Of a stretch of 64,000 bases of DNA, positions 205-57,268 are shown one piece after another. The notes below the pieces were generated by a model. The model searched no databases. It was not told where the DNA came from and was given only the letters and a program-made list of their open reading frames with translations. The position numbers and the translations under genes were made by a program. Origin of the DNA: Chlorokybus atmophyticus (lineage: Eukaryota; Plantae; Mesostigma and Chlorokybus algae). The number at the start of each line of letters is the position of its first letter. Within the stretch, counting starts at the first letter, position 1. The stretch covers positions 1 through 64,000 of the forward strand of contig RHPI01001442.1 of NCBI GenBank assembly GCA_009103225.1, given 5' to 3'.

Positions 205-3200
205 TCAGACAGCAAGCACAACAGCACGTGTGAGGACAACAATAGCAAGCAATCTAACCTGNCCTAACCTATGAATCTCCCCATTAAGCAGCACAGCCTT
301 GTAGTGGTAAGCCGTATTCTGCACGAGATGCCTAGCATCTGCTCTGATGTGCCTGCTGACCATCTCAAACCGCTCTGAGCTTAGTGGTGTGGGTTGACCT
401 GGCAGCTGGCCAATAAGTATGCCTCGAGCAAGAATGTCTTGTGACTCAGACCGGTGTGGACACGTCTCAGCCTTCTTCCAGAGTTCCAAAGCCTTGCTTT
501 GACTGGGTGCTTCGTACCAGAAACCTCCAACACCGCTGGACACGCGATGGGACCGCAACTGCAGCTGAACGCGTGTTGCAAAGACCATGCCCGTGCGCTG
601 GTCTTCGCGCAAGACAGTAAGCAGCCGCTCGTACTACAAGCGTACATGTCGATGTATGTAGATGAACTCATACTCTTTGTTGTTGGTGCTGGTCTCCAAG
701 TGATCTGAGACAGCGCGCTCGAAGACGTAGCACCAGTACACATCATGGCTGCCGTGGCGGAAGATATTGTCCAGCAGATGACCTGCTCCAGCAGCATGCT
801 CTAGAGGTCTCAAGTTGTGGCCAAAGCATTCTTCTGAGTTGATACGCCAGTAACGCAGTAAGCTGTCTGCCAGTCTGAGGGTGTCTTCGGTCCAGCCATT
901 GAAGCGGGAGTGGCGATAGAACAGGCAGATGAGCTTGTGTAAGGACATGAAGATGTCGCGCATGTGCGACAAGTCAGCAAGCCCGTTGTCACGTAAGGTG
1001 CAAAGTCCTGCATAAACTTCTTGTAGTCTTCTGCCTTCCACGAGCCCAGCCTGTCTGTAATCCCCTTTGGAGAGCGCCCGGATCGCATTTCCTTGATCAA
1101 GGCTGCAGTGAAGTCCTTAAGCCTGGCCTCCACCAAGGGAACATCCACCACCCTTTCGTGCGCTCCCTTTGCAAAAACTGCATGGCAGAGGCCCTTCACT
1201 AGACCTTCACACAAGGTGTGCATGACGTCGTACACCACGTCCTTGAGTGGGCTGAAGCCATAGGCATGGTAGAGGCGCCACAGTTGGCTCCTGCCTGTGA
1301 CACCTGTCTCCATGCTGACTTGTGTTCCAATAGCAGGGGTAGCAGCAGTCTCCAGCTTATCAATGTTGGTCAGAGTCTCCTGTTCTTCTCTCTCGGGCCA
1401 TGGATGTCTTGAGTGCATGAAGTTCTGATCGTAGCGGTAGACCTTCTTCTGGTAGGTGTTGAGCTCCACTGCTTGGGAGTTGCTAGGACCAGCTGGACCA
1501 TTGCTGGTTGATGCAGCAGCACGCTTCTTGCTGGCAGGTTGCTTCTTCTTCTTCTTCTTCTTCTCAGCCGCCTGCTTCTTATTCCTGCTAGCAGACTTTG
1601 CCTGGCTGCTGGACTTGGAAACAGCCTTCTTGCAAGCAGACACCTGCTCGTCGTCGGACTCTGGAGCAGCCTTGCGCTTTACAGGCCTTTGGGCTTCTTC
1701 CATGTAGGGCTGGGCCTTACACCAGCATCTGCGGCAGCCCAAGATGCCACCATCTTTCATCTTCAGTATCTGACACTGGGCTGGGTGATCACCAGCCCAG
1801 ATGAGCAGCATCGCACGCAAGCGCGTGGTAGCACCGGCTGCTTGAGAGTGCAGGTCAGGGCAAACTTCAGAGGTGGGGAGGGCATAATTGCAGGTGAAGC
1901 CCTCAAGCAGCAGTGATTCGAGCTCGTCTATAAGTGGCTTCAGAAAGGGGTCCATGTTGTCAACCCCCTTGGGAAGCTGATCTTTGGGCACAAAACCCAC
2001 AGGAAGAAGCGAAGACGTCTGCGCGCTCAACAACTTGCCTCCGTTCAAGATGGCCACGTTGATCATCAGCGTGTTGCGGGGGCTGGTGCTGGCTGTGGTG
2101 AAGCCGTCCCAGTGGCCAATGAAGATGAGGTTCCTCGGGTCACCGCAGGCCATATGCTTGAAAGGACAGGTGACCTGCTCGCAGGTGCGACACCGAAACC
2201 TCCACTGCGGCCCATCATCACTGTCGCCTTCAGTGAAGTGGTGGCCTGGTCTGTGAACTGTCTGGCAGTGCTCGCATCTGACTGGCAGCCAGTAGGTCTT
2301 CTTGGGGTTGAAGAAGTCGGAGATCTCCCTCATACGAGCTCCATCCCAGACTTCATGTTGACTGGCAGGAGGTATTGCTGGATCTTTGTCAAGCCACCGC
2401 TCCCGGTGCAGCCAGGCCTGGAGCCATTGATGACAGATGGTTGGCACGCCCAACATAAGCTGCAACCTTGACCTGAGAGGGAGGTAGTAGAAACTCGTGC
2501 CTTCCTTGCGTTTCTGACTGCAGTCTGGGCACTGTTCTTTTGCCATGGCCTTGCGCTCCTTCTCGCGCTGCCGGTAGCTGGAGCGCACCGAGTCTTCGTC
2601 TTGCACAACGAGCTCAGCATTTGGATAGGGCTTGTCGAACAGGTGGCCGCAGGCACAGACAGAATAATGCAGTGTTGAAGGCATCCCCATGCGCTCAAAC
2701 ATGCCAATCAGGCTCTTGCAAGTAGTTGGCAGCTTGAAGCCTTCGCTCTTCTCATCGAACAATCCCTTCTTAGCCAAAGCCATCAGGGAGCTTTCGCCTT
2801 TAAAGAGGACAGGGAGCAGTTTGTTGAAGCAGTCCTGCGAGACTCCAGCTTCGTCTAGGATGGATGAGATCTCGATTATCTTGTCCAGGTAAGTTGTAGA
2901 CGTCTGCTGCAGATCAGGCAACTTGTCTGCATCAAAGCTGTCCAAAGTGGGTTGCACAGTGGGAATGCTCCTCAGCCGTCTGGCCGCCTCGTCTTTGGCT
3001 AAGTGCGCATCGATGACCAAGCGCGGCTGCATGATCTGCGACACAGTAAGGGTGTAAGCAACGTGCATGCATGGTCACTTGTTCATCAGCGCAGGCCAAG
3101 CGAAGCAACTTACCAAGCCTTTGCACTTGGAGCAGAGGCAAAGGTCGCGACTGAAGGTTGGAGGCTGCTCAGGCTCAGGCTCTTGGTTGCCAGAATGATC

Positions 3201-7743: not shown

Positions 7744-9752
7744 ATGGGGAAGCAGCAGCTTGGCCGTCACAAGAACATGCTGTGTGAGGCAGTGCGCACC
7801 TCGCTGAAGGCAGGCACAGCCTCCTCCAGCTCCTCGTCCCTTACCAGCCTTGGGGACTGCGCTGGCGAGGAGTTTGAGTTCGATGAGCTCTTCACTGGAC
7901 AGTCGCCTCCAGGGAGTCCCAAGGCTTCGCGCTTCAGGCCAGCAGGGGATATGCCTGATGGTCACCTTGAGGTGAGCGCCAAACAAAACTCCACATAGCT
8001 TAAAACCTACCATACCTACCAAGGGCTACTACGTCTTGTAAACTCGGACTGGCTTGTTGTGACTGCCGCCAAGTGCACAGCGTTCAGTGCCACATCTGCA
8101 AGAGCGTTGTGTCACTGTTCTAACCACAACAATCTGTCGTGCTCATGTGTTGCGCTGTGCACTTGGCGCTGTGCACACATAAGCATAACAGAAACAGTTG
8201 TGCTTCTCATTTATGGCTACATTCTACGTCGCTCGCAAAACATTAGCAACCGTTGCTCTTGCTGTTGTACGCGTATTTGCTTCTGTAGACTGCTGTGCAA
8301 ATGAACCCGCAACACAAGCATACTGTAGCTGACAGTTATCTTCACTTGCCAGGAGCAACTGTTGGAAGTGGAGCAGCAATGCAGCTACAAGGAGCACTCT
8401 AGTGTTCTATACCCAGAACGGATCACACGCAATGCACATTCGCTTCTCGGGCCAACACCCGCACCTGCCGCATTTTCGCTTGAGCAGCTGCGGTCCCTGA
8501 AGGACCCTCAGCCCGAAGACGACAGTGACGATGGGCGTGACGTAGAGGTCTCTGCCGTCATAGCTGGCGTGGACAGGGAGGTTCCTGCGGGAAGCAAAAT
8601 GGGGCCTGGAGATTTTGAGCTGCTGCGGGTTGTAGGCAAAGGCGCGTTTGGCAAGGTCTTCCAGGTGGTCAAGAAGGATGACGGCCAAGTTCTGGCCATG
8701 AAGGTGAGCATGCCAGCTGTGTCTGTTATGTTTGCTTCTGTCACTCTGTTGTTCACCATTTAGTCGCTGTGCCTGTTTCGCTGTCTCAGCCCTCAACACC
8801 TTGTGGTATTGCCCTTTCTCATGTAGTATATGCCATGCAGGTTATGCGAAAGGACCAGATACTAGCCAGGAACCACACTGGTTACATGCGAGCTGAGCGA
8901 GACATCCTGACATCTGTTGAGCATCCCTACATCGTGGCAATGCGCTACTCTTTCCAGACCCCATCCAAGCTGTACTTGTTGCTTGACTTCATTAATGGCG
9001 GCCACTTGTTCTTCCAGCTGTACAAGCAGGGCATCTTCAACGAGGAGCTGACGCGGTTGTACACTGCCGAGATTGTCCTAGCCGTCGCCCACTTGCACAG
9101 CTTGGACATCATTCACCGCGATCTAAAACCCGAGAACATCCTGCTCGACACTGAGGGGCATGTGCGCATAACTGACTTTGGCTTGGCAAAAGCCGAAGTG
9201 ACAGAGATGTCTGCCACAAACTCCCTTTGCGGAACAATGGAGTACATGAGCCCGGAGATTATTCTTGCCAAGGGTCATGGCAAGCCCGCCGACTGGTGGT
9301 CACTGGGCATTTTGATGTGCGAGATGCTCACCGGCAAGCCTCCCTTTTACCACAAGAACAGACAGAAGTTGCAAGATCAGATAGCAAAGCAGAAGCTCAA
9401 GCTGCCCTCCTACCTCTCCCCCGCAGCTCACAACATTCTCAAGTCCCTGCTGAACAAAGACCCCGCCAAGCGGCTAGGAAGCGGCCCCACAGGTGCCGCT
9501 GAGATCATGTCACACCCATTCTTCAAGCCCATCAACTGGAAGCTACTGGGAGCGCGCAAGATCCCGTCTCCATTCAAGCCAGACATTGATGGCGACCGCT
9601 GTACCGCCAACTTTGATGAGACCTGGACCAAGATGCCTGTTGCCGATTCCCCCAGCGAGGCCCCTGCCGGCTTCACAGACCCTCTCGCAGACCCCTTCTT
9701 TGGTTACACTTACATCCGCCCAAATGTGCTGGACACAGTACTTGCTAGTTAG
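7744..9752 (+). CDS. S6K: Ribosomal protein S6 kinase (AGC kinase), 3 coding exons: 7744-7971, 8353-8703, 8841-9752
   Basis: GPGDFELLRVVGKGAFGKVFQV, HRDLKPEN, DFG, activation loop NSLCGTMEYMSPE, hydrophobic motif FFGYTY. All phase-0 GT-AG introns. Confidence 0.93.
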
Positions 9753-10361: not shown

Positions 10362-11889
10362 TTAATCACCATAGATACATAGCCTTCCCTTAGCCATCAG
10401 CTTCCTATAGGTGTAGTGCTCCAATGGCATGAAGTGAGCGACAGAAACGGAGTGTCCGCGCTGAAAGTACTTCCCTCCACTCATCCCTGAGAACCCATAC
10501 ATATCGACGCGTGTGCACAGCTCCGACATGATGATGACGAGGGCTGTCTGAAACCCTCCCGAGGGCTTCATTATAGACTTGGGCTTGGCCATGTTATACA
10601 ACTCTATCTTCAGTCCCCCCAGCTCACTTCCCGGTGGACCCCGCGTGACAAAGTACTTGCCGTTGATCTGCTCGGTGTTGTACTCGGGCGTGTGGCGCGG
10701 GAGGTACGCCAGGTCCGCCTTCATGTTGGCCTTCTTGCCGAAAGCCGTGCTGTAATTGGGCTTGACGATGATTACAGATGACTTCCGGCCGACATACTTC
10801 TCGTAACCCTTTATCGGCGTGTTGTAGCGAAACACCGTGTCGTGCGCATCGATCTCCTTACCCCTCGGTGGCTGCAGATCCAGATTGGGCAAATGAGTGT
10901 ACTGTGTGGTCACGCAGGTGCATCTCACTATGCATGCCACATACCAAAGAGCCACACACACACAAATACGCAACCACAAACCAACAATTGCACCCAACCC
11001 ACAGACCTGCCCACACAGGCACACACGCAGGTGCCCAGCCACCCACCCACCCACACGAGCGCGCGCACGCACGCACATACGCATGCATAGATGCGCAAAC
11101 GTCTGCATACAGTAACGCTTGCACACCCTACACGCACATACACGCAGACACGCCCACCCCCACACCAATCTCCACCTCTCACGCCACTGTCGACAACACC
11201 CACTCAACTTCCAACCGTGCACACACGCATGCACACAAGACCAAACACCAAACACCATTCCACCCACCCAGTACCTTGATAACATTCTCGCTGTTCCCCA
11301 CCAGCGCGCACGACCCGAGCGACCCCTTCCCTCCCGGCAGCAAGTGCGTCCTCGCCCACTCGTACACGGCGACCGCATCGATACCACTCACTTCAGCAAA
11401 CCTCAGCGCGGAGGGCGAGCCGGGCCCGAAGCACGTCCTTGACGTGATCGAACACGTTTGATCGAATGAAGCTATTCTATCAATGATGGCGTCCGCACCC
11501 GCCTTTGTAACTTCGCTCTTGAAAGGGTTGGAACTCTTTTTGCCGCCTTGACTTGGATCAAAGGGACACACATTGCGCGGGAGAGAGAAGGGAGAGTCTG
11601 ATGTTGTTGTGGAGGTTGCTGTTGGTAGGGTGAGGATGTCCTCCTCCTGGGTCTTTCTCCTGGGGTTGTTGTCCTTCTCCTCCTCCTTTTCCTCCTCAAT
11701 CTTGTCGTTGTTGTCGTTGGCAGTGTCGTCGGTGGTCTGTAGGGCGACGTGGCCGCCGCCGAAGCCGGCGCCAACCACGCCGCCGCCGCCGTTCCTGCCG
11801 GCGGCGCCGTAGTCGATGCTCGCAACGGCCAAGTCACGGAGGAGACGGCCGTGGGCACCAAGCTGGTGGAAGGCCGGGGCTGCGGGTAT

Positions 11890-43848: not shown

Positions 43849-46653
43849 CTAACTGCCCATGGAATAGGCCTGTGGCTGAGAGTGGACAGAAGTGTGAGCA
43901 TGCATGTGCTCATTAAGCACCTGCTGAAAGTAAAAGTCGGTGTCGCTGAATGGGCCCAAGCCAAGGGTAGGAGGTGCAGGCTGATTGAGCACATGAATGT
44001 AGGTGGGTGAGAGCGTGGGGTGGTCCAAGTTGAATCCCGTCAGCACCTGGTCGACATCAGCCTCGGGTGCATGGGTGTATTCATCATCATAAGCAACATT
44101 GTAAAGACTGTGAAGGGCAGCATCAAACTCATCAGGCTCAACATCCTGAGTTGGCTCCTCCGTCAGCATGGCATTGGCCCCCTAGCTGGTGTTGTCGTCA
44201 TGCTCATCAAGCTGCTCTTGTTGTGGTCTGCAAAGTGCATGAATTGATCGCTCGCACATGCAGCATAACTACCTGCCAGATGTGAATCTCAATGTCATGT
44301 AGCAGATTGTCTGTGTTACTCACAACAAGCTCAAGGTATTTACCTCGTTGGCGGAGGAGTGTAAGCCAACTTGATAGCCGTCATCATGCTCACAGTGGTA
44401 CAGCTCATGCGGTTGCGCGGTCAGAGTGAAACCAACCCATCAAGGAAAATGTCCTCTCCGGGGCAGCTGCGTGTGGCACAATGTCAAGAAGCAGCACTGC
44501 AAGGTTGACTAGTTCTTTCGTGCTTGCTTGGCAAATACTTAGCCACCACGCTCTGACATTAAACTCTTCTCCCCCTACTGGTGCAATGAAAGGGGGTAGA
44601 GAGCTTATTGTACATCTGCATCTGCTTGAGCAAGCGCTGAACTTTTCTTATGCCGTGCCCTCTCTTTTTGTGCAGCAGTCCAGCCTGCGCGGTGAGCATT
44701 GCCGCTCTTAAGAACCTACTATAAACAGCAACAACACACAGCACCATGCAGCACAACACAGCCACACACGATGTGACTTTGTACAAGTGAACTCACCTCT
44801 TGCAAGTAGCTGCCATTTCGCAGGGTCGTCAGCAGCATGCTTGTAGCGGGGGTCAAGGAAGAGGGCTAACCTTGCCAAGGGTTGTATTCAAGACACAGCT
44901 GCAAGCAACAACCAAAGCACCTGCAGGGAGGTTGATCTCCTTGATAGCTCTGGCGAGATAGAGCCAGTATCGGGTTATATCAGCCAGTGTGGCATCAGCT
45001 GCTTGCACAGCCATGATGATTTTGCTGAATGGCTGCAGCAGCTCACACAGTGACGCCAAGCCTTCTCAGAAGGAGTGGTTGTCAATGATGACAACAAATG
45101 CATTGTTCTTCATGACATCACGGTGTTGCTTACGCACCAACCTCAAGGGGCCCTCCATACGTTGCACAGACTCTAAGCACTTTCAACAAGCGGAACCAAC
45201 TCATTGACAGAGCATGCATAGCAATAACCAGCTTGTACATGCATATGATGATTTGCCACTCTCTCACACCTATGCACGGAAGTGAAGCGGGTCTTGTTAA
45301 AGCTGTACAGTGTGGTGTTTATCCCATCTGCTTTGGCAGCGTTTTTTAGTAGAGCCAGAGGCCTATGTGATGCGCGGAAGTATGTCACAATCTTTTGGGC
45401 ACTCATAATGATGTTCTTGGCCCATGAGTAGTAGCCCACCACAAAGCCCATTGCAAGAAAAAAGCCATGCATGTAGCACCTGTGCAACAACATGTGCTGT
45501 CAAGCATATGTACAACCATTACTCACGCACGTTGACTGACAGTAATTTACCGCAATTCAATGATGTGCGTATAGTCCTCTTTGCCGACTAGCAACTTCCT
45601 AGCTGCTTTCATGTTGGCGGCATTATCAGTGACCAAAGCTGCCACCTTTGTTGCCCCAATGCGATCAATGCACTCACAAAAAACCTCCGCAATTGAGCAC
45701 TTGCATGAGCACATGCGCCTTCATGTGCTGCACGCCACAAGCACAAGCATGCGCAATGATTGATTGAAGGTCGTCAGCAAGTGTGCCACACGTTCAATGG
45801 TAATCACCATACAACCATACACTGACTGGTTGTTGACATTCGTTAAACCGTCAAGGGTGATGGTGGCGTTGATCTCCCCCTTCATACGCTCTGTGAACTG
45901 GTGCTGCACTACTGCATGTTGGTCGACCAACAACCTAGTTTGCAACTTTGTTGCACTTGTCAAAGCAAGCATGCATAGCTGAGCACGAGCGTTCAGGCAC
46001 ACATGTACACGCTCACGTACATGCACATACATGCAGACTGGCACGCATACATATGCAATTCCTTCATGTCTACACTGTTGCGCACAATGAGAATTACCTG
46101 GCAGTGTATATAAAGGGCGCAACGTCTGCACAAGATCAGTGAAGTACTTGCTGTTAGCAACGTAGTATGGTATGCCGCACATGACGAAAAATATCAACGA
46201 CTTGGCATCCAGCTCATCACACAGTCCTTTACCAAGTGAGCCACTTTCATAATGCGCAGTTATGGAAGATTGCTCAACTCTACGCTTGCGCCTCCCACCA
46301 ACTACATTTGCCGATTGTGAAGCAGCCCTGCCACGCTTGGCAACTAACGCTCCTAATGTTGCACTTCGCACAGGCTGAGTTACCGACCTGCACTCTTCTA
46401 TGGTGTGCCTCTCCATCGCCTCCACACGTGTATCCTTGTACTGCTTGCCGCAGTAGTTGCACTTAGCTCCAGGGCGCCTGTTCCTGTTGCCCATGCCCTC
46501 CATCTCAGTGAAGTGCGTCCATATCATGGTCGTGGGCGCACCACCAGGATATCGTGGGGCTGGGGTTAAGGCGCTGTCTTTGTGCTGCAGCGTGGACTCC
46601 TCCTCCTCCTCTTGGTTGTCCTCAGACAAGCTAATGGCAGCGTGAGTCGCCAT
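43849..46653 (-). pseudogene. BED-zinc-finger hAT transposase pseudogene, intron-containing
   Basis: BED finger WTHF...CNYC...H....C. Catalytic TLDG, VTDNAANM, CYMH, KTRFTS and APERTFS (~44455). In-frame TGA near 45068 and frameshifts (~45740, ~44410). Confidence 0.85.
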
Positions 46654-46721
46654 GGCCGGTAACGCCGCCGCCGCCGGCGGCTAGCAACTGCCTCACAGGG
46701 CGGGCGGGAAGGGCGCGACAC

Positions 46722-46803
46722 TTCGTTGCCGTTGGCGAAACCCCACTGTTCCCGCCAAATTCGAACTTGGCGGGAACATTGGGGTTTCGCCAACGGCGAC
46801 GAA
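46722..46803. repeat. 82-bp spacer-less palindrome upstream of the hAT transposase start
   Basis: 41-nt arms with 3 mismatches, compared base by base. Confidence 0.92.
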
Positions 46804-47474
46804 CAGACACCCTTGGTGCAACTTGGCGAGAGTGACGGCGAAACACGCATTGACGAAACTTCGTAGAAGCAACGTTAACACTGGGGTGGATGCTTTCGAA
46901 TACGGTGGCCATCGATTACCGTTGCGGTTACGATTGTGCCGTATACGTACCTCTATACCCAAAGCGTCTCTAGAGACGGTGTGGTATGTGTGGTCGAGAC
47001 GCTCAGCGTCTCTGCCGGTCGGCCTATGAACGGCACGTTATAAGTCCCTAACCTAACAAGTATCTATATCGGTTACCGACTGGTGATATTGAGACCTTGC
47101 AAAGGCTTGAATATCAGCAATCTTTACTCTCCTGTGGGTGGGCGTTGCTAGCGTGGGCGGCGGCGTGGGCGGCGGCGGCGGCGGAGGAGGCGGCGGCGGC
47201 GGCGGCGGAGTTACTAGTGCTAGTGTACTTAATGCTAGTTGTGCTTGACCGTGGAGGGCCCCTCCTCTGAGTTATATGATCAGTGGGCAGGGCACTGGTT
47301 AGTTTTGTTCCTTGCTGCACTGGTGAGTCAGTTGATACGATGCTTGTGTGTGCGTGTGCGTTGAGTTACGTGCATCATGTGCGTTGCATTGCGTGCAAGC
47401 ATGCGTGTGTATATGCGTGTGTAGCATACGCATGCGAAATTGTTGCTTACATGCATAAGTGTGTATGGCATATT

Positions 47475-47756
47475 GTGACATGTGGGGTTGTGTTGGCAGC
47501 ACCTCTGTTGATTGTTGTGCGGCAAGGCCTTCGACACTCTGTCAGCTGCTGCATGATAGCTCAGGTGGGTGGTGTAAACAGCAAGTTGCTATTGCGTGCA
47601 TGTGGCACAGCACAGCTTGTTACTGCATTGTGTGACATGTGGCATTGTGTTGGCAGTACCTCTGTTCATCGCTGTGCGGTAAGGCCTTTGACTCTGTTAG
47701 TTGTCGTATAGTAGCTCAGATGGGTAGTTGGGTGTCAACGGCAACTTACTATTGCA
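47475..47756. repeat. Degenerate ~157-bp tandem duplication upstream of the Crypton ORF
   Basis: gtgacatgtgg..ttgtgttggcag.acctctgtt...aaggcctt...tagctcag at 47475 and again at 47632. Confidence 0.85.
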
Positions 47757-48160
47757 TTGTACATTGTGGGGAACACTGTGCATTGTAGCAAACACTGTGC
47801 ATGTGGCAAACAGTGAGTGTAGCATGGGCTTGTTATCGTGGTTTGCGCAATGCATTTACATCACGTGTGAGTGTCAGCAGCTGCTACTACGTGTTCCATG
47901 TGTGTAGCATGCGTGTGTGTAGCATGGGCCTTTCACTGCATCGTCTGACACGTGTGATTAACGCTGTAGTATCTGTTGCTCACCAATGCGCGACAAGGCA
48001 GCAAGTGCCTCAATTGCCACCAGCAAGACACTGTCAGGTGGTGCTAGCTTCACAGGTGGGTGGGTGGGGTGGTGGGTGGCAGCTTGCTAATACGCTGTGC
48101 ACGCCTGCAACGTTTGTGCAATGCGGGCATGCATGCGACTCATTCATCAAGTGCAGGATC

Positions 48161-51100
48161 ATGGCTTGGCGTGGAGCTCTGCGTCATGTAAGAGTCCTGA
48201 GTAGCCTGCAAGGGCTGCACGTGTCCAAGGCTTTTGGGGATGGTATTGAGTTTGCGGCGGCTGCCAAGGTGTTGAACAAGGGGCATCACAATGGAGAGTC
48301 AAGTCTCTCTCCATCGCGCATTCTGCCTGCATTCACCTCAATTGCTGCACCAGCGCTATCAACACCAGTGACCAACACCTCTGCATTCAATGCATCTTCA
48401 TTGTGGTTGCCCTTAGCGGCATTGGCAGCCATGGCTGGCGGCATACAAGTAAGCGCTCACGGCAAGCCTTGCTTAAGTACTATGAAGTCTTGTACTGCAA
48501 GACAACAACTTCTTACGCCATCTACCGTTGCAGGCCAACATGAGTAGCGATCATGAAGATGAAGAAGCAGAGGAGCACGGGATGCCCCCATCCCCCAGTT
48601 CTGCACCGGGCGTGCCAACAGTGGCGGACATATTGAACCGCAAACACAAAGAACGCCCGTCCAATACTCGTGTGAAATATCAGCGAGGACTACGGTTGTA
48701 TGAGGTATAGACTTGTAATGCTAGGCAACAGTACAAGTGTCAATAGCTATAGATTTGAATGTTTTGCAAGTGTAACTTCAATTGTAGGAGTGGTGCACTC
48801 GACATCGACTGTCCCTACGCATTGAAGCGAGCATTGTGGAACGCTTCATGACCGAGCATCATGAGTGGGCATGGAACAAGTTGGAAAACTGCATGAAGAG
48901 TTTGCAGGATGCCGCAAAAGATCAGGCAATGCGAGACGGCAATGGCACTATACCAATCAACTTGCGCAGCATTCCCATAATCCAACGAATCCTGCGAACT
49001 GCACGACAAAGCATATCAGAGACCGCCAAAATGTAAGCTAAGCTTCATGTTGATTGCACAACCATGATGCTGATCTAAAAAACAAGAGCATGACTTATTA
49101 TATCAACAGGGAGTTCAAGGACCGGTTAGCTGGGACGGCTGCAGAAAGTTACACACCTGCTCAGTATCAGAGCATGAATGAGTATTGGCTTCACAAAAGT
49201 GCAAACGCTACTAACATTGCGAAGCAAGCCGCTGCGTTGAGAGCTCGGTAACTGTCATGCTCGGTGCCATATTGCGGGGTTATGCACGTGTCGACATGAT
49301 TGTATTGGTCAGTAGGAGTGTCACCATCATTAACAGTTGCTAAATGCGTGAGCAGGCTGGATCTTGCAATGCGTCATACTTGTTTATCGCGCGGTGATGC
49401 CGTCAGGGCAGCAGAAGAATGCGATCTGTACAAGTATGATGTGGGGACTGGGTGCTTAGGACCGGATCAAGGCGTGATACTCTGTTTTGTGTCACGCAAC
49501 GGAAAGATGAATAAGGTGTGCATTTGCCTTTTGTTTCCAACCTTAAGCTTTCATCTCACACCACTTGTGCCACAACATGCTCAGTATAGTGTTGCGCAGA
49601 ATGGCAATGTGGAGTACTTCGGCGGGCTGCGACACTGGAATCCCATGTGTGACATGCACAATGCACTGGCATGCACTTTCTTCCACAAGTACCACATCGC
49701 GCAACGCCCATTCCCTTCCTTTGAATCGCGACAATCTTGGTACGCTATGCGCATAGCATTGTGCTTGCATACAATACTTAATTAATAATGCGTGCAGGTA
49801 TGGCGAGCCATTGTTCCCTGGTGAGAGGACCGGAAAGGCTATCAGTTACAGACAACAATACTTGAACTCCTGTGAAGCATTCAAAAATTGTGGCATCGTC
49901 ACCGGCCGCGCCAAAGTACACGCCCCGCGCAAAGAAGCGAGTCAGCAAGCCATGAATGCCGGGTGAGTTTGCACTACTTTGTGCCATTCCCTTGCTGTCC
50001 ACACCTCAGCACTGGGTTGATAGGGCAAGTGAGGAGGGCATCAAACAAAATGGGCGGTGGAACAACGAGCACTTCAACAAGTCCTATGTCACACAGCTCC
50101 ATGTGGGTACTTGTGCTGTAATAGCAGGTTATGGGCATCAGAGTCACGAGCATAAGCATGTGCTGGCCCGATCACGGTTTCCCTTACCCGACAACATTCG
50201 TAAGTGCATCTTCCCGCAGCTGGAGGAGCATCTTGCCTCTGTCATGCAGGTACCTTCTGTTGAATTCTTTTGCACATAACTTGCTCACTCTAAGATGTGA
50301 TGCAATGGCTTTGCCACATGCAGTCAAGTGTTGCACTGTATTGATGTCGGCACACGCTTTACACATGCATTCCTGCAGCGCTGCTTCGATGGTCCCGACG
50401 AGGTGCGAGACTATGCTGCATACAAGCATCTTCTCATGTTGGACTATCTGCGAGATGTTATCGGACAGGTAAGCATGTGTATATCCTTATCAACAAGTGC
50501 AGTCCGCGATCATGCGTCTTGTGTATTGCTTATTAGGATGTCGCCATCATGCGCAACGGTTGTGCAACTGCGCGGCGGTACCACATACGGCTGCACAGAC
50601 CTATCAGTTTGTGACCACCATCTGTTCAACACGCCACAGTTCAATGCGTGGGCCAACACCGTCGTCGCCGCTCACGACCAGTCCATGCAAGAAGCAAATC
50701 CGCAATATGAAGATTTGCCGGATCGGGTATGTATGACACACAACTGCTTGGTTGACTTGCTGTTGTACAATGTGTATCACGGTTTGTCCCCTTAAGGTCT
50801 ATATATGTTCTGGTCGCGCAGCTAGCGCACATCATGCGCGGCAACTATGCATTAATGACCGTGACCAAAGACCGCATTGTGGACGTCGCCTGCAAGCTTC
50901 ATCGTGTCATTACAGCTATCGACGCCGGCTTTGCAGCGACACAGGCAGAAGTGAAGGTTGTGGCTGACTTGGTGCGAAAGCTAGGTGCCGGTATGGGGGT
51001 GTCTTTGCCTGCAGATGTGGCATCAACAGCTGCTCGTGAAGAGGCACCGTCCGCACCATCACCGTCACGCAAACGCGCACGTGCCAATGATCCCCGTCGT

Positions 51101-51535
51101 GCTTCTGATCCATCATCAGCGGCAGGCGATAATGTCACTCGGCAATCAGCACCTTCTGTCGCCGCTACCTCTGTACCCACCAAGTATAGAATGAAGATTG
51201 ACTTACCAACCGTGGTAGCGGTGTGGCAAGAATACACGACGGGCATAGATGGTGGGCCGGCAATCCGCGACTTGGATGACAAGTTCAAGTCCACTTGGCG
51301 TTGCGGCGATGAGCGCATGCGCAAGCAATACGGCAAGCGCAATGTTCTGTATAAAGCTATCAAGGAGTTGGCGGCATTGCGGGACATCAGTGAAGACATG
51401 GCAGCACAACAGTTGGATCAGCAGCGGCAAGAGCAGCAAAAGCCAACTACAAACGGCAAAGGCACCAGACCATTGACTGTAGCGGAGCTGACTGAAGTGC
51501 TGCGCCCCAAGAACAGGAAAGAAGTTGGTGAATAG
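48161..51535 (+). CDS. Crypton tyrosine recombinase (YR + GCR1_C), ~11 exons, no disabling lesion seen; alternative start at 48540
   Basis: DRLAGTAAESYT, LRAR|LDLAMRHTCLSRGDAVR (Arg I), RNGKMNK, GLRHWNP, KVHAPRK (HxxR, 49919), GRW, FNKSY (Tyr 50085-50087), IFPQLE, and YRMKIDLPTVVAVWQEYTTGIDGGPAIRDLDDKFKSTWR (GCR1_C-like). The exon junctions checked are GT-AG and in phase; one small middle exon near 50536-50562 is tentative. Confidence 0.85.
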
Positions 51536-51649
51536 CTTAGCTGATCTGGTGCAATAAGTTGATCATTTGTGCAGTCACTCATTCAAGTAGCTTGCACATG
51601 CGTATGCGCACCCCCCCCCGCCCCCCCCTCTTACACACACACACACACA

Positions 51650-52172
<523 letters not shown>

Positions 52173-52744
52173 NNNNNNNNNNNNNNNNNNNNNNNNNNNN
52201 NNNNNNNNNNNNNNNNNNNNNNNNNNNNNNNNNNNNNNNNNNNNNNNNNNNNNNNNNNNNNNNNNNNNNNNNNNNNNNNNNNNNNNNNNNNNNNNNNNNN
52301 NNNNNNNNNNNNNNNNNNNNNNNNNNNNNNNNNNNNNNNNNNNNNNNNNNNNNNNNNNNNNNNNNNNNNNNNNNNNNNNNNNNNNNNNNNNNNNNNNNNN
52401 NNNNNNNNNNNNNNNNNNNNNNNNNNNNNNNNNNNNNNNNNNNNNNNNNNNNNNNNNNNNNNNNNNNNNNNNNNNNNNNNNNNNNNNNNNNNNNNNNNNN
52501 NNNNNNNNNNNNNNNNNNNNNNNNNNNNNNNNNNNNNNNNNNNNNNNNNNNNNNNNNNNNNNNNNNNNNNNNNNNNNNNNNNNNNNNNNNNNNNNNNNNN
52601 NNNNNNNNNNNNNNNNNNNNNNNNNNNNNNNNNNNNNNNNNNNNNNNNNNNNNNNNNNNNNNNNNNNNNNNNNNNNNNNNNNNNNNNNNNNNNNNNNNNN
52701 NNNNNNNNNNNNNNNNNNNNNNNNNNNNNNNNNNNNNNNNNNNN
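52173..52744. other. Assembly gap (N run)
   Basis: N bases. Confidence 1.
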
Positions 52745-53190
52745 TATATATGTGTCTAGGTGTATTTGCCACCCAGCAGCGCTCAGCAAATGACGACGCT
52801 GGCGCGGACGGGCGTCGACCGTCGGCCCGGGGTGAGCGCCGACGGCGCGGCGCTCGGTTAACCGAGGGCGGCCGCTCGGCCGTTGGGGCGCCGGCCTCGC
52901 GCGCGGCTGCCGGCCTTTCCCGCCGGTCGGGCCCGCGGGGGCCACGCGGGCCGTCTCTGCGGCCTCCTGGCGACGGTGCGGGCTTCCGACTCCGTTTTGG
53001 CTTGGCCAGCGCTCGGGTGAAATTACGCTTTTGTGAGTTACGCCCTGTGTGGGTTACGTCACTTACGCCCCGCTGGATTTTTGGTGTGTCAGTAAGGTCA
53101 CTGGGCCAGCAAGCAAAGCCGCCACGACTCCATGCATCATGCATGAATCATGCAGCATGATGCATGGTGTTCAACACTGTTGAATCAACA
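52745..53190. other. Very GC-rich, palindrome-dense non-coding block, possibly a transposon terminus
   Basis: ctcggttaaccgag, repeated TTACG(C/T) motifs at ~53024-53070, ccatgcatcatgc/gcatgatgcatgg and ttcaacactgttgaa. No credible ORF. Confidence 0.45.
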
Positions 53191-54419
53191 GCGAAATCCG
53201 CTTTAACTCCCCTTCATTATGGTTGCCTCATGCATTACTGATGTACAGATATAAATTGTGATTAAAGTTTGATGCATGCAATAGTAATACACGTACGTAT
53301 GATCATGCAATATGCAGCTTGTTTAGGTATTTGATATTTTTCTTTTGTCTGTTGTTTAATATATAAAAAGAATTACGACTTGTATTGGATGCGCATTTAC
53401 ACACATATGCATTTCAATTTTGTTTATTACAAAACGTCAATTGTTGTGAATAAATCGCATGTTGTTTTTCAACAAAATGTGCAATTTACCACTCAAGTTA
53501 TGTGTTGAAACATTACAGTCAACAATAGCATAGCATTCTTATACATTTTTATACACCTGAAAAAGTTAAATTGGATTACATGACCATGTAGTACACGTGA
53601 CACCTTAAGATAACACTCAAAGATCTGATTGTGTATAGTGTAGCTATTTTACGATTGTACCATCAGTTTGTTATTATAATACAAGCAGCAAAGTCAACAT
53701 AGTTCTTATTATTAGCAATTGCATATGCGATTGCATCGGCGTATACAAATGCAAAATGTGCAACATAATTATGTTTTTGCACTATCACAAGTATTGATGA
53801 CTATTATCATTTCAAGTTGATACTTTCAACTTAATCATGATTTTGCATGGATATTTAAAGAGAAAACACATGACGTTATATGATATAACTCACAAAAAGG
53901 AAAGGCTAGCACTGATGGCAACGCATGGCGTGTGTGCGAAACCACACGTGTAGCCTAGGAGTTTTGTATGTGAGAGCATGATAACAATGGTGTGCTGAGT
54001 TCATGTATACCGGATATGCTGCCAGCAGTTGTAGACATGCATAACATCACTCACAGCACGTCAAACATCATGCAAGCAAGTATGTCGCGAGTGCGGTGTG
54101 ACTGGCATGCGCTTGGCTCGCCTTGCAGCTGTACACTACAGTTTTTGCATATACAGTTAAACCGCAAAGAGTGCATGACGTTGGTGCCCCTAGTAAAACC
54201 CCATTGAGAATATGCACTTAACGTGGATATGTACGTCTAACGAGTGGCTGTTGCCCGTGGTTTGGCCTTCGGTGTTAGTGAATTTTACGCACTAATTGCA
54301 TTTCAACGGTAATATTTGCTGCTGTATGCGCTTAGCGAATGTGCACTTACAGCGGCTAGACTGTATGTCATTACGTATCTACTCTTATATTGTGCAAACA
54401 ACCACTAACTTGCACATCC

Positions 54420-54780
54420 TTGCATAATGCGCCTGCACAGGGCCTACCAGGTCCTCATGCAACGCAAATCAGGCAAGCTAGGAGGAATTTGCTTGAGTTG
54501 CCCAAGTTGCCTGCTTAGTTCAACCAGACCAAATCGACACTTGTCATCTATGCAGAACTCAGTGTTACCAACAACAGTCCACGGTGGTCTGTTGCTGTGG
54601 AACCCACAGCGCTGTTGCGCCACCGCGACAAGCACGACAGCTGCAAAAGCAGGCTCAATGCACCACTGAACAGTGCACTTCAGCATACCGCCGATATGCG
54701 CATTGCACTGTTCCATGACAACTACCGGCGGTATGCGCAGTTGCTACTGAAATCAGTGCATGTGTGTAATACCGCCCTAA
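54420..54780 (+). pseudogene. Possible non-LTR retrotransposon relic (post-RT region)
   Basis: KSTLVIYAELSVT...ALQHTADMRIAL weakly resembles the post-RT segment of RTE/RTEX/L2-type ORFs as recalled. Interrupted by stops. Confidence 0.25.
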
Positions 54781-54874
54781 GTCACCACTTACACAACAAG
54801 ACAGTCAGCACCCGATGCACAACATCATGAATGTAATCTACAAATATCTAGGACCTAACCAATCTGATCACCTA

Positions 54875-55687
54875 TCACTCAACATTGTAGCCAGTCAGAC
54901 TACCCCTGCGTCCAACAATCTCGCCAACAACGAATAGAGCATAACACTCCGCAGCAAACAGCAGGCCCGTGCCAACCGTCCTCGTGCTAACGTTATCCAA
55001 GTCATCCCAGATCTTTTTCACTTGTTTCACCTCTTTCCGCATGGTCTGATATCGTCCTGGGATGCTGCCCATACCAGAGAACACAAGGTTTACATTTGTA
55101 TTAAGATGATGAACATCACATGCAAATGTCAAGTGCTCACACTGGAAGATGACTTGTGTATTTGAATAGGAACTATGGCACTATCACAAGCTCACCAATG
55201 TGTTACTTCGTGCTACCCTAATCGTCGCACTATACGTTATGGTGATTTAACGTCAACCTTCAATGACCTGGTAAACGCTTATTACAACAGCTAACGCCGT
55301 GTTGCTGAAATCAAACTGACCGCCGAACAACAACACATTGCTCAAGTGCGCACAATAGGTACAGCCAATAATCACGAGAATATTGCGTACAAGCTGAGGG
55401 AGAGATGGTGTAACTTCGTTTGAGTAGCCAGCGTATACAAGGCGTGATAGCAAAACATCAGCAAAGACATACCTTGCAAGTCGAGTGTACAGTAATTGCT
55501 TAGACAGCTCGGCGCATTTTTCTGGGCTGGGGTCCTTGACAATGTACTGCTTGTTGTTCTCAAGTAGACTTTTGTAGGCGGCCTCCACGTGCGTGCCAGC
55601 AAACCCGCCTGCCTTGCGCAGCGGTGCCGTTGCGCTCGACAACAACTTCTGCGCAGAAGTAGCAACAGCCTTCGCAGCCCCTGCCAT
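54875..55687 (-). CDS. ATP20: Mitochondrial ATP synthase subunit g, 2 exons
   Basis: YKSLLENNKQYIVKDPSPEKCAELSKQLLYTRLA|SIPGRY...LFAAECYALFVVGEIVGRRGSLTGYNV, matching plant-type subunit g with the GEIVGR motif. Confidence 0.9.
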
Positions 55688-55976: not shown

Positions 55977-56084
55977 CACGAGCCCTCTTTGAAGCCGGAG
56001 GACGCCGCCGCCGCCGCTGCCGGCGCCGCGGAGGGCGAGGAGGAGGAGGGTGTTTGAGGACCTTTGGCTCATATCTTGCCCAGT

Positions 56085-57268
56085 ATGGCGGCGAGGACTG
56101 TTAAGGATGTACAGTCGCACGACTTCGTGACGGCGTACGCGGCCCACCTCAAGCGCACCGGCAAGCTTGAGGTGCCTGCCTGGGTCGACATTGTTAAGAC
56201 TGGGTCATTCAAGGAGCTGGCGCCCTATGATCCCGATTGGTACTACATTCGTGCTGGTAAGTGCAGCACGCCGTGTGCAAGTTAAGCGTTCTCGCATTGC
56301 TCTACATAAGTTCCACGATGGCGCTCGTAACATGCTACGTAGTTGGGAGGCCTTGGTATCGTGTTCTGACTGTCAAGCAGATTATAAAATGTTAACATGG
56401 GCTGAGTTTAATCCCGCTGTGCATTTGGCACAGCGCTTTTCCAGCAGTTAGCCAATTTTGGAGTGACTACGTTACATGACGGCGTTAGGTGCACATCTTT
56501 TACTCTCGTGGTGCTAGTGCGCCGTAGGTACGTTTTCTGCCTCCTATCAGCTAGCGCTGGAACCGTTTCGTGTAGCCTTGGGTGACCGAGAGCTTGCAAA
56601 TTGTCCACTAAGGCTGTGCATTAGGGCTATGCCTCCAAGGCTTGCTTCGTTATGCACATTGGTCAGCTCCGCATAACTTGGTTGACAGCTTGTAGCTGCT
56701 GGCCATAGCTCATGTTACCTTTATTGTTGGTCTGCGCTCAGTACGCATCACATTGCGCATCCTTGCTGCATTGGGGCAGTTGGCAATCATGCCACCCTCT
56801 TAGACGTTGATTAACATTGTGTTTCCTACGTCTATCAGCTTCCATGGCGCGCCGCATCTACCTCAGGGGCGGCATTGGGGTTGGTGCCTTCAGGAAGATT
56901 TACGGTGGCCGTAAGAACAATGGAGTGATGCCACATCACTTTGCTAAGAGCAGTGGCTCTATTGCGCGGCAGTAAGTGTTCATGCTGCAACGGGGTAGCC
57001 TCTTGCACAGTTGGCGTCTGGCGAGCGTTTCATGCTAGTGTTGTGACATCATCTGTGCCTTTGCCAGTATACTCAAGCAGCTGGAGACGCTGAAGATCGT
57101 GGAGAAGGAACCCAAGGGGTAGGAAAATATGTCCATTTATCTTGTTACCAGTATGGTATTGCAGTGCTGACAAGCATGTTCTGTGGCAGTGGGCGCCGCA
57201 TCACCGCGGATGGCCAGCGAGATCTTGACCGCATTGCTGGACGTGTTGGAGAGCCTGCATCTGCTTGA
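56085..57268 (+). CDS. RPS19: 40S ribosomal protein S19 (eS19), 4 exons
   Basis: [45 protein letters not shown]|[47 protein letters not shown]. Confidence 0.97.

Follow-up and report, generated by a model that had tools for sequence, protein, structure and literature searches.

The 64,000-nt stretch of Chlorokybus atmophyticus DNA analyzed here (positions 1–64,000 of the forward strand of contig RHPI01001442.1, assembly GCA_009103225.1; hereafter, the window) carries a gene for a CryptonF-type tyrosine recombinase with a GCR1_C domain, which belongs to a multi-copy family. With a probability of about one half, the locus is an ordinary, recently disabled CryptonF copy, the family protein of which starts at position 48540, and the DNA preceding this codon is the element's own 5' region. 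An earlier sequence-only reading of the same DNA had proposed a Crypton recombinase fused to a mitochondrial presequence-like leader. The features on which that proposal was built, namely, an open 96-codon exon, a phase-0 junction, a basic N-terminus free of acidic residues, an R-V-L-S site, a second ATG and an SPSRKRAR motif, are all present in the DNA, and the assignment to Cryptons holds, with Pfam analysis and collinear BLASTP alignments specifying the CryptonF type. According to the reading preferred here, the leader is not a mitochondrial adaptation, and the locus is not a domesticated gene.

Gene Model and Relatives of the Recombinase

All of the gene pieces located downstream of the leader can be joined by GT..AG introns of 58–129 nt, which results in an 11-exon model on the + strand. 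Exon 2 (48534–48704) holds the start codon at 48540–48542 (MSSDHEDEE...) and an RPxNT..Y motif. Based on the gene model and the collinear BLASTP alignments, the tyrosine-recombinase core is spread over exons 3–9 (48788–49032, 49110–49247, 49356–49515, 49600–49739, 49798–49962, 50024–50249 and 50379–50468). It is followed by exon 10 (50537–50726), in which the frame shifts, and by exon 11 (50822–51535), which contains the SPSRKRAR motif, the GCR1_C domain and the stop codon, and is out of frame with exons 1–9 in this copy. Pfam analysis revealed a GCR1_C match (PF12550; E-value, 8.8 × 10−18) that covers the full model length within exon 11 (about 51182–51430), as well as weak NDC10_II matches on exons 6 and 8. 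Alignment with four full-length relatives (P0073, P0086, P0144 and P0107) places the catalytic codons at 49390 (R), 49919 (H), 49928 (R), 50058 (W) and 50085 (Y). Such a recombinase would cut and rejoin DNA site-specifically by means of the tyrosine (codon 50085) together with the R/H-x-x-R/W residues, and its C-terminal GCR1_C domain would bind DNA. Between 47712 and 53160, no open reading frames (ORFs) of at least 60 residues were found beyond the recombinase exons, their out-of-frame or antisense overlaps, and frames of the microsatellite and assembly gap that lie 3' of the gene. No inverted repeat flanking the Crypton gene was found either.

The four CryptonF-like relatives were retrieved with exon 11 as a query against 1.84 billion representative proteins. 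All of the relatives from this representative library share at most 43% identity, and most of them are fungal-type multi-GCR1_C or CryptonF proteins. From end to end, the spliced model aligns collinearly with P0073, P0086, P0144 and P0107 (BLASTP E-values from 4.6 × 10−36, for P0073, to 4.4 × 10−24). Like the window protein, the four full-length relatives have a short acidic N-terminal stretch followed by an RPxNT..Y..EF..WC motif, and residue 1 of each of them aligns with Met 48540. These alignments show that the canonical start of the predicted family protein is ATG 48540. Thus, the "leaderless form" that the sequence-only reading had derived from the second ATG is the family's normal protein, and the leader would be a 98-residue addition to it; the start itself was placed correctly, and what changes is that the form it gives is the canonical one. 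No match was obtained when the last-exon ORF (233 residues) was used as a homologous-protein query, nor when viral and metagenome collections were scanned with exons 11 and 8. An exact look-up of four window ORFs in a protein collection found none of them, and self-BLAST of 47000–52100 against the 64-kb window revealed no second copy.

Frameshift in the Window Copy

The reading frame is intact through exons 1–9 and into exon 10, where a +1 shift near 50558 leads to a TGA codon at 50612–50614. This part of the gene was compared with contig assemblies of sequencing runs under the Chlorokybus label (X1–X4), contigs and not raw reads being used throughout. X1 is filed under the same species name, X2 is a same-genome DNA run, and X3 and X4 are RNA-like assemblies. 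The X1 contigs are 90–95% like the window and, being spliced exactly at introns 9 and 10, derive from RNA. In the spliced X1 relative, exon 10 is in frame and measures 198 nt, versus 190 nt in the window; the relative has an additional A after 50558, an additional A after 50559, and AAGCTT after 50691. The two A residues are also absent from the X2 DNA contig that is 99–100% like the window; therefore, the 2-nt deficit in exon 10 is probably real, with X2 being limited as a check on it in that this run may be the sample behind the assembly. Seven of the ten listed differences between the window and X1 in exon 8 are synonymous. The differences in exon 10 are mostly synonymous in the shifted frame, which shows that this frame has been kept by the family.

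As encoded, the product comprises 566 residues when read from 48161 or 468 residues when read from 48540, and both versions end without GCR1_C and SPSRKRAR. As judged from its sequence, this Crypton copy is not intact, its GCR1_C domain and SPSRKRAR motif being out of frame with the leader. The recombinase had been described as catalytically intact, which is correct for the catalytic residues but not for the gene, given the frameshift in exon 10. In this copy, SPSRKRAR, which had been presented as resembling a nuclear localization signal in the C-terminal half of the fusion, is not part of any product that starts with the leader.

Family Copies and Their Transcripts

Besides the contigs that are 99–100% like the window, X2 contains further contigs with 90–99% identity over the coding region, in which introns are more diverged than exons. 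Based on these comparisons of sequences, the Crypton family is multi-copy and not a single host gene. One X1 contig of 640 letters joins 48668 to 49991, so that 1322 nt are skipped, with one letter in between and intron 8 kept. It comes from a relative with an internal deletion and represents either unspliced RNA or DNA of the diverged Chlorokybus sample.

Expression was assessed with the exon of a protein kinase gene (8682–9749), located 40 kb away, as a reference. Both X3 and X4 contain 82% of the words sampled from this exon, and neither reached the threshold of a twentieth of the words for 47900–51600. The leader exon alone, if present, would account for about 8% of the sampled words of the latter region, and thus neither this copy nor the leader exon is detectably expressed in these two assemblies. 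In X1, only 15% of the kinase-exon words are present, which suggests a diverged strain or a cryptic species as its source. No X1 contig lies on 46700–48525 or contains the 48448/48534 joint; one X1 contig merely ends at 48560 and is uninformative on the leader. The transcript check proposed for the 48448–48534 junction yielded no contig in X1, and in X3 and X4 the region stayed below the threshold.

Leader Frame Upstream of the Canonical Start

The putative exon 1, i.e., the leader, extends on the + strand from ATG 48161 to the CAA codon that ends at 48448 (96 codons without a stop), and no homologue of it was found. It is followed by the putative intron 1 (48449–48533, + strand), 85 nt in length and thus within the range of the remaining introns of the Crypton gene (58–129 nt), with CAA|GTAAGC as the donor at 48449 and TTGCAG|GCC as the acceptor. 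Introns 3 and 9 of the gene begin with this donor hexamer as well. Removal of the 85 nt joins the leader to the recombinase frame in phase 0 (...GGIQ|ANMSSDHEDEE). The first 26 leader residues include three Arg and one Lys and neither Asp nor Glu; RVLS occupies residues 11–14, and the hydrophobic stretch SLWLPLAALAAMAGG residues 80–94, at the end of the exon. The second in-frame ATG is found past the junction at 48540, and SPSRKRAR is encoded by 51059–51082. The context of the leader ATG is good (A at −3, G at +4). Five further ATGs lie between 48161 and 48540, so that leaky scanning cannot yield both isoforms.

The full open frame around the leader comprises 252 codons (47789–48544), and without splicing it runs into TAG at 48545–48547. 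The recombinase frame is closed upstream by TGA 48483–48485, located within the putative intron 1. The open frame extends for 124 codons 5' of the leader ATG (47789–48160), where no frame scores as coding; as this part is open all the same, long open frames arise here by composition alone. No Pfam match, no homologue among proteins of 53–168 residues and no usable ESM Atlas hit were obtained for the leader, and it had no match by tblastn on the window or by BLASTP against 163 fetched proteins.

Repeats are found 5' of the Crypton gene: a 130-nt direct repeat with 78% identity (47468–47595 and 47625–47755) and a 19-nt tandem repeat in 2.9 copies (47758–47812). They sit in G+T-rich, A-poor DNA, a composition by which open frames of the + strand are lengthened by chance.

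Candidate Ends of the Element

Short direct repeats bound Cryptons (PMC3212892). A candidate left terminal direct repeat on the + strand (48113–48146), consisting of TTTGTGCA, 17 nt and ACTCATTCA, ends 14 nt before the leader ATG. The candidate right counterpart (TTTGTGCA, 3 nt, ACTCATTCA; 51566–51585, + strand) starts 31 nt after the stop codon. When a spacer of 1–30 nt is allowed, these are the only two instances of the composite in the 64 kb, both of them on the + strand. Both flanks of the candidate element are TG/CA-rich, low-complexity DNA. In comparisons with real sequence, 2.7–8% of the other 118-nt pieces have two 8-mers in common with the 5' zone in the same order. Against such controls (P of about 0.03–0.08), the repeats are no more than suggestive as predicted ends of the element. 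The direct repeat did not stand out when the 5' and 3' zones were aligned locally without bias, and the CAYCG target motif of the Chlamydomonas CryptonF is not present at the candidate ends.

If these repeats are the termini, the element measures 3.47 kb and includes the leader, which makes capture of a host exon at this site less likely. The 14 nt from the left repeat to the leader ATG would leave no space for an internal promoter, and any leader mRNA would have to be transcribed from a promoter in the flanking DNA. The stretch from the candidate left end to the canonical ATG (48147–48539, 393 nt) most likely represents the element's own 5' region. It contains an open frame together with a good GT..AG pair, which may be a real 5' intron with its 3' end 6 nt ahead of the start codon. 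At 119 nt past the Crypton stop codon, a perfect (TG)259 microsatellite (51654–52172) begins; it continues into an assembly gap (52173–52744), so that the DNA directly 3' of the element is partly hidden.

Presequence-Like Features of the Leader

At least four Lys or Arg and no Asp or Glu in the first 26 residues, as in the leader, are found in 8–9% of ATG-started window ORFs, and the helical hydrophobic moment of the leader (0.456) is at the 88th percentile of window ORFs. An R-3 cleavage at RVLS would leave a presequence of 13 residues, which is shorter than the usual range of presequences. The leader is Ala/Ser-rich, with a hydrophobic core ending in A-M-A, and a plastid- or thylakoid-type signal is therefore equally likely. 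As far as residues can tell, "mitochondrial" is not established as better founded than "plastid" in a plastid-bearing alga. A DNA enzyme would hardly benefit from a stop-transfer or lumenal signal. Transcripts, homologues and a second copy of the leader were not found in the data searched. Whether the leader is translated at all appears doubtful, and that it is targeted specifically to mitochondria is improbable.

Alternative Explanations for the 5' Region

When the upstream 1200 nt were subjected to dinucleotide shuffling, with the acceptor fixed and the donor allowed 50–200 nt away, an in-phase ATG leader of at least 96 codons with a GT[AG] donor was obtained in 8–10% of the shuffles, a level compatible with a chance frame in the 5' region of an ordinary CryptonF copy. 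Several other properties of the leader weigh against chance. With a GTAAG donor, such a leader was found in 0.3% of the shuffles, and none of 4000 shuffles gave an in-phase leader of at least 96 codons that also had the codon score of the real one. A codon-usage log-ratio trained on exons 2–11 gives the leader +0.187 per codon in its own frame, compared with −0.38 and −0.28 for the two alternative frames. The true exons of the Crypton gene score 0.23–0.46 per codon, and the frame pattern of the leader matches theirs. In sliding windows, the codon score is positive from 48161 and negative after about 48430, and only 0.2% of the open 96-codon stretches from local shuffles score as high as the leader. 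Of 194 window ORFs, the leader is the only one that combines basic composition with an R-x-[FYL]-[SA] site. In addition, the unspliced leader frame overlaps the canonical ATG and would block the canonical start, so that transcripts entering from upstream would give the recombinase only as a fusion. The statistics of these tests were picked after the data had been seen. About 10% of real non-coding window ORFs reach a similar codon score, and in DNA that is clearly non-coding, 30-codon windows often score at least 0.2. Under a codon model derived from the host kinase, the leader scores −0.06, and its G+C content at third codon positions (GC3), 0.50, equals that of the flank, versus 0.58–0.72 in the host genes of this region.

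The same observations bear on the alternative that the leader is a real first coding exon of the Crypton family, spliced at 48448/48534 and adding 98 residues that resemble an organellar transit peptide (mitochondrial, plastid or thylakoid-type), with transcription from flanking DNA and a leaderless form from an internal start site. Coding-like codon usage bounded by the ATG and the donor, a strong donor (GTAAGC) and acceptor (TTGCAG|G) in phase 0, a combination rare in shuffles, the good ATG context and the joint rarity of the presequence features speak for such an exon. The candidate direct repeats enclose the leader, and the preference of CryptonF for 5' untranslated regions (UTRs) in Chlamydomonas would suit a promoterless element. 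However, no transcript, homologue or second copy of the leader was seen in the material searched, and the homologous proteins begin at the second ATG. Moreover, about a tenth of the real non-coding ORFs score alike, the leader has the GC3 of its flank, leaky scanning is excluded by the five ATGs, and the R-3 presequence has only 13 residues. A real exon is therefore possible but not the expected outcome. In its fullest form, the idea would be of a Crypton family with an element-encoded spliced exon for a cleavable organellar targeting peptide, which would send the recombinase to mitochondria or plastids, a leaderless nuclear form being produced from an internal start. The element would be promoterless, beginning almost at its ATG, and would be expressed from host promoters after insertion near the 5' ends of genes. 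This full version is unlikely. If true, tyrosine recombinases encoded by transposons would have their first organelle-directed member, and nuclear mobile-DNA enzymes a possible route to rearranging organellar genomes. As this case shows, transit-peptide-like frames located 5' of genes in this Ala/Arg/Ser-rich genome call for transcript or conservation evidence before they can be accepted.

Alternatively, the leader may be the first exon of a host gene that was hit or adjoined by the Crypton, making a copy-specific chimera through the acceptor before the Crypton ATG. CryptonF insertions in Chlamydomonas favor 5' UTRs (PMC9977147), which would fit such an origin, as would the weak significance of the direct repeats and the single-copy depth of the leader region in X2, where the coding region has extra depth from other copies. 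Against it, no continuation on the + strand was found in 52745–54900, with the 572-nt assembly gap hiding part of the DNA, the leader exon was not found in the X3 and X4 transcriptomes, and no protein of 53–168 residues matches it. The candidate repeats, furthermore, lie outside the leader, and the GC3 of the leader (0.50) is lower than that of the host genes (0.58–0.72). No donor gene was found for the "captured host exon" of the sequence-only reading, and a host origin of the leader is improbable.

The idea of a domesticated, organelle-acting Crypton, i.e., a single functional host gene sending an active recombinase to mitochondria, draws on the mostly synonymous nature of the exon 8 and exon 10 changes that separate the window copy from X1, which points to purifying selection on the coding sequence of the family. 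But an active transposon family is also expected to be under purifying selection, and here the family is multi-copy, the copy is frameshifted and deprived of its DNA-binding domain, and it was not detected in the same-species transcriptomes. Domestication is thus very unlikely, and this part of the earlier proposal is abandoned in favor of an ordinary, recently disabled CryptonF copy.

Neighboring Genes

Upstream of the Crypton, the − strand carries an intron-split hAT-like gene (43849–46653) with a BED zinc finger (PF02892; E-value, 2 × 10−4), which starts at 46653 and reads away from the Crypton. A 41-nt near-perfect palindrome (46722–46803) is located just upstream of its start, and no terminal inverted repeats were found at the boundaries of this gene. 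Downstream, the gene for mitochondrial ATP synthase subunit g (54875–55687, − strand; PF04718) is 100% identical to the JGI Chlat1 protein Chrsp238S03639, its exon lying 4 kb from the Crypton, and the host is Chlorokybus atmophyticus CCAC 0220; the gene is arranged head to head with a gene that encodes, by sequence, ribosomal protein S19e (56064–56285, + strand).

The reference kinase exon (8682–9749, + strand) comprises 356 codons of an AGC-type protein kinase (Pkinase E-value, 2 × 10−64, and Pkinase_C). It is adjoined by an ORF for a glycosyltransferase of family 29 (sialyltransferase-like; 10365–11387, − strand; E-value, 4 × 10−12). The longest frame of the window (813–3074, − strand; 754 codons) has a weak match to Transposase_21 (tnp2, CACTA-type; E-value, 0.0035) and may be a transposon gene.

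Comparison with Known Systems

CryptonF elements are reportedly covered in Goodwin et al. 2003. They are known in green algae, and CryptonF-1_cRei is active in Chlamydomonas reinhardtii (PMC9977147). With the CryptonF elements described (Kojima & Jurka 2011, PMC3212892; PMC9977147), the window copy shares the tyrosine recombinase with a C-terminal GCR1_C domain, full-length collinearity, the catalytic R, H-x-x-R, W and Y residues, multi-copy occurrence and possibly a short direct repeat at each end. It differs from them in its early-diverging streptophyte host, its ten or eleven introns, its frameshift, and the extra upstream frame able to add 98 residues; its candidate repeats (blocks of 8 + 9 nt) are also longer than the usual 5–6 nt. 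In the literature library searched, Crypton and Chlorokybus were not mentioned together in any paper. Through this locus, an intron-rich CryptonF family becomes known from one of the earliest-diverging streptophyte algae, and a relative of the window copy is transcribed and spliced in a run filed as the same species.

Crypton-derived host genes, such as Cbf2/Ndc10, Gcr1 and Hot1/Msn1 of yeast and KCTD1, ZMYM2-4, QRICH1 and WOC of animals, have the NDC10_II-like recombinase fold and GCR1_C in common with the window gene. These genes are single-copy and conserved, and most of them are devoid of the catalytic residues, whereas the window locus is a broken copy from a multi-copy family in which these residues are kept. 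Some genes, for instance those for uracil-DNA glycosylase (UNG1/UNG2) and for plant DNA ligase 1, use two in-frame starts or alternative first exons to produce both organellar and nuclear or cytosolic isoforms. With them, the window locus shares a presequence-like extension ahead of a second Met at which the relatives begin. The isoforms of those genes are established by transcripts and localization, while the window locus is known from its sequence, and its five intervening ATGs rule out simple leaky scanning. Finally, a Crypton-type recombinase-like protein of a green-algal mitochondrion also links a protein of this type with that organelle; its gene, however, is organelle-encoded and DUF3504/CryptonA-like, whereas the gene of the window is a nuclear CryptonF.

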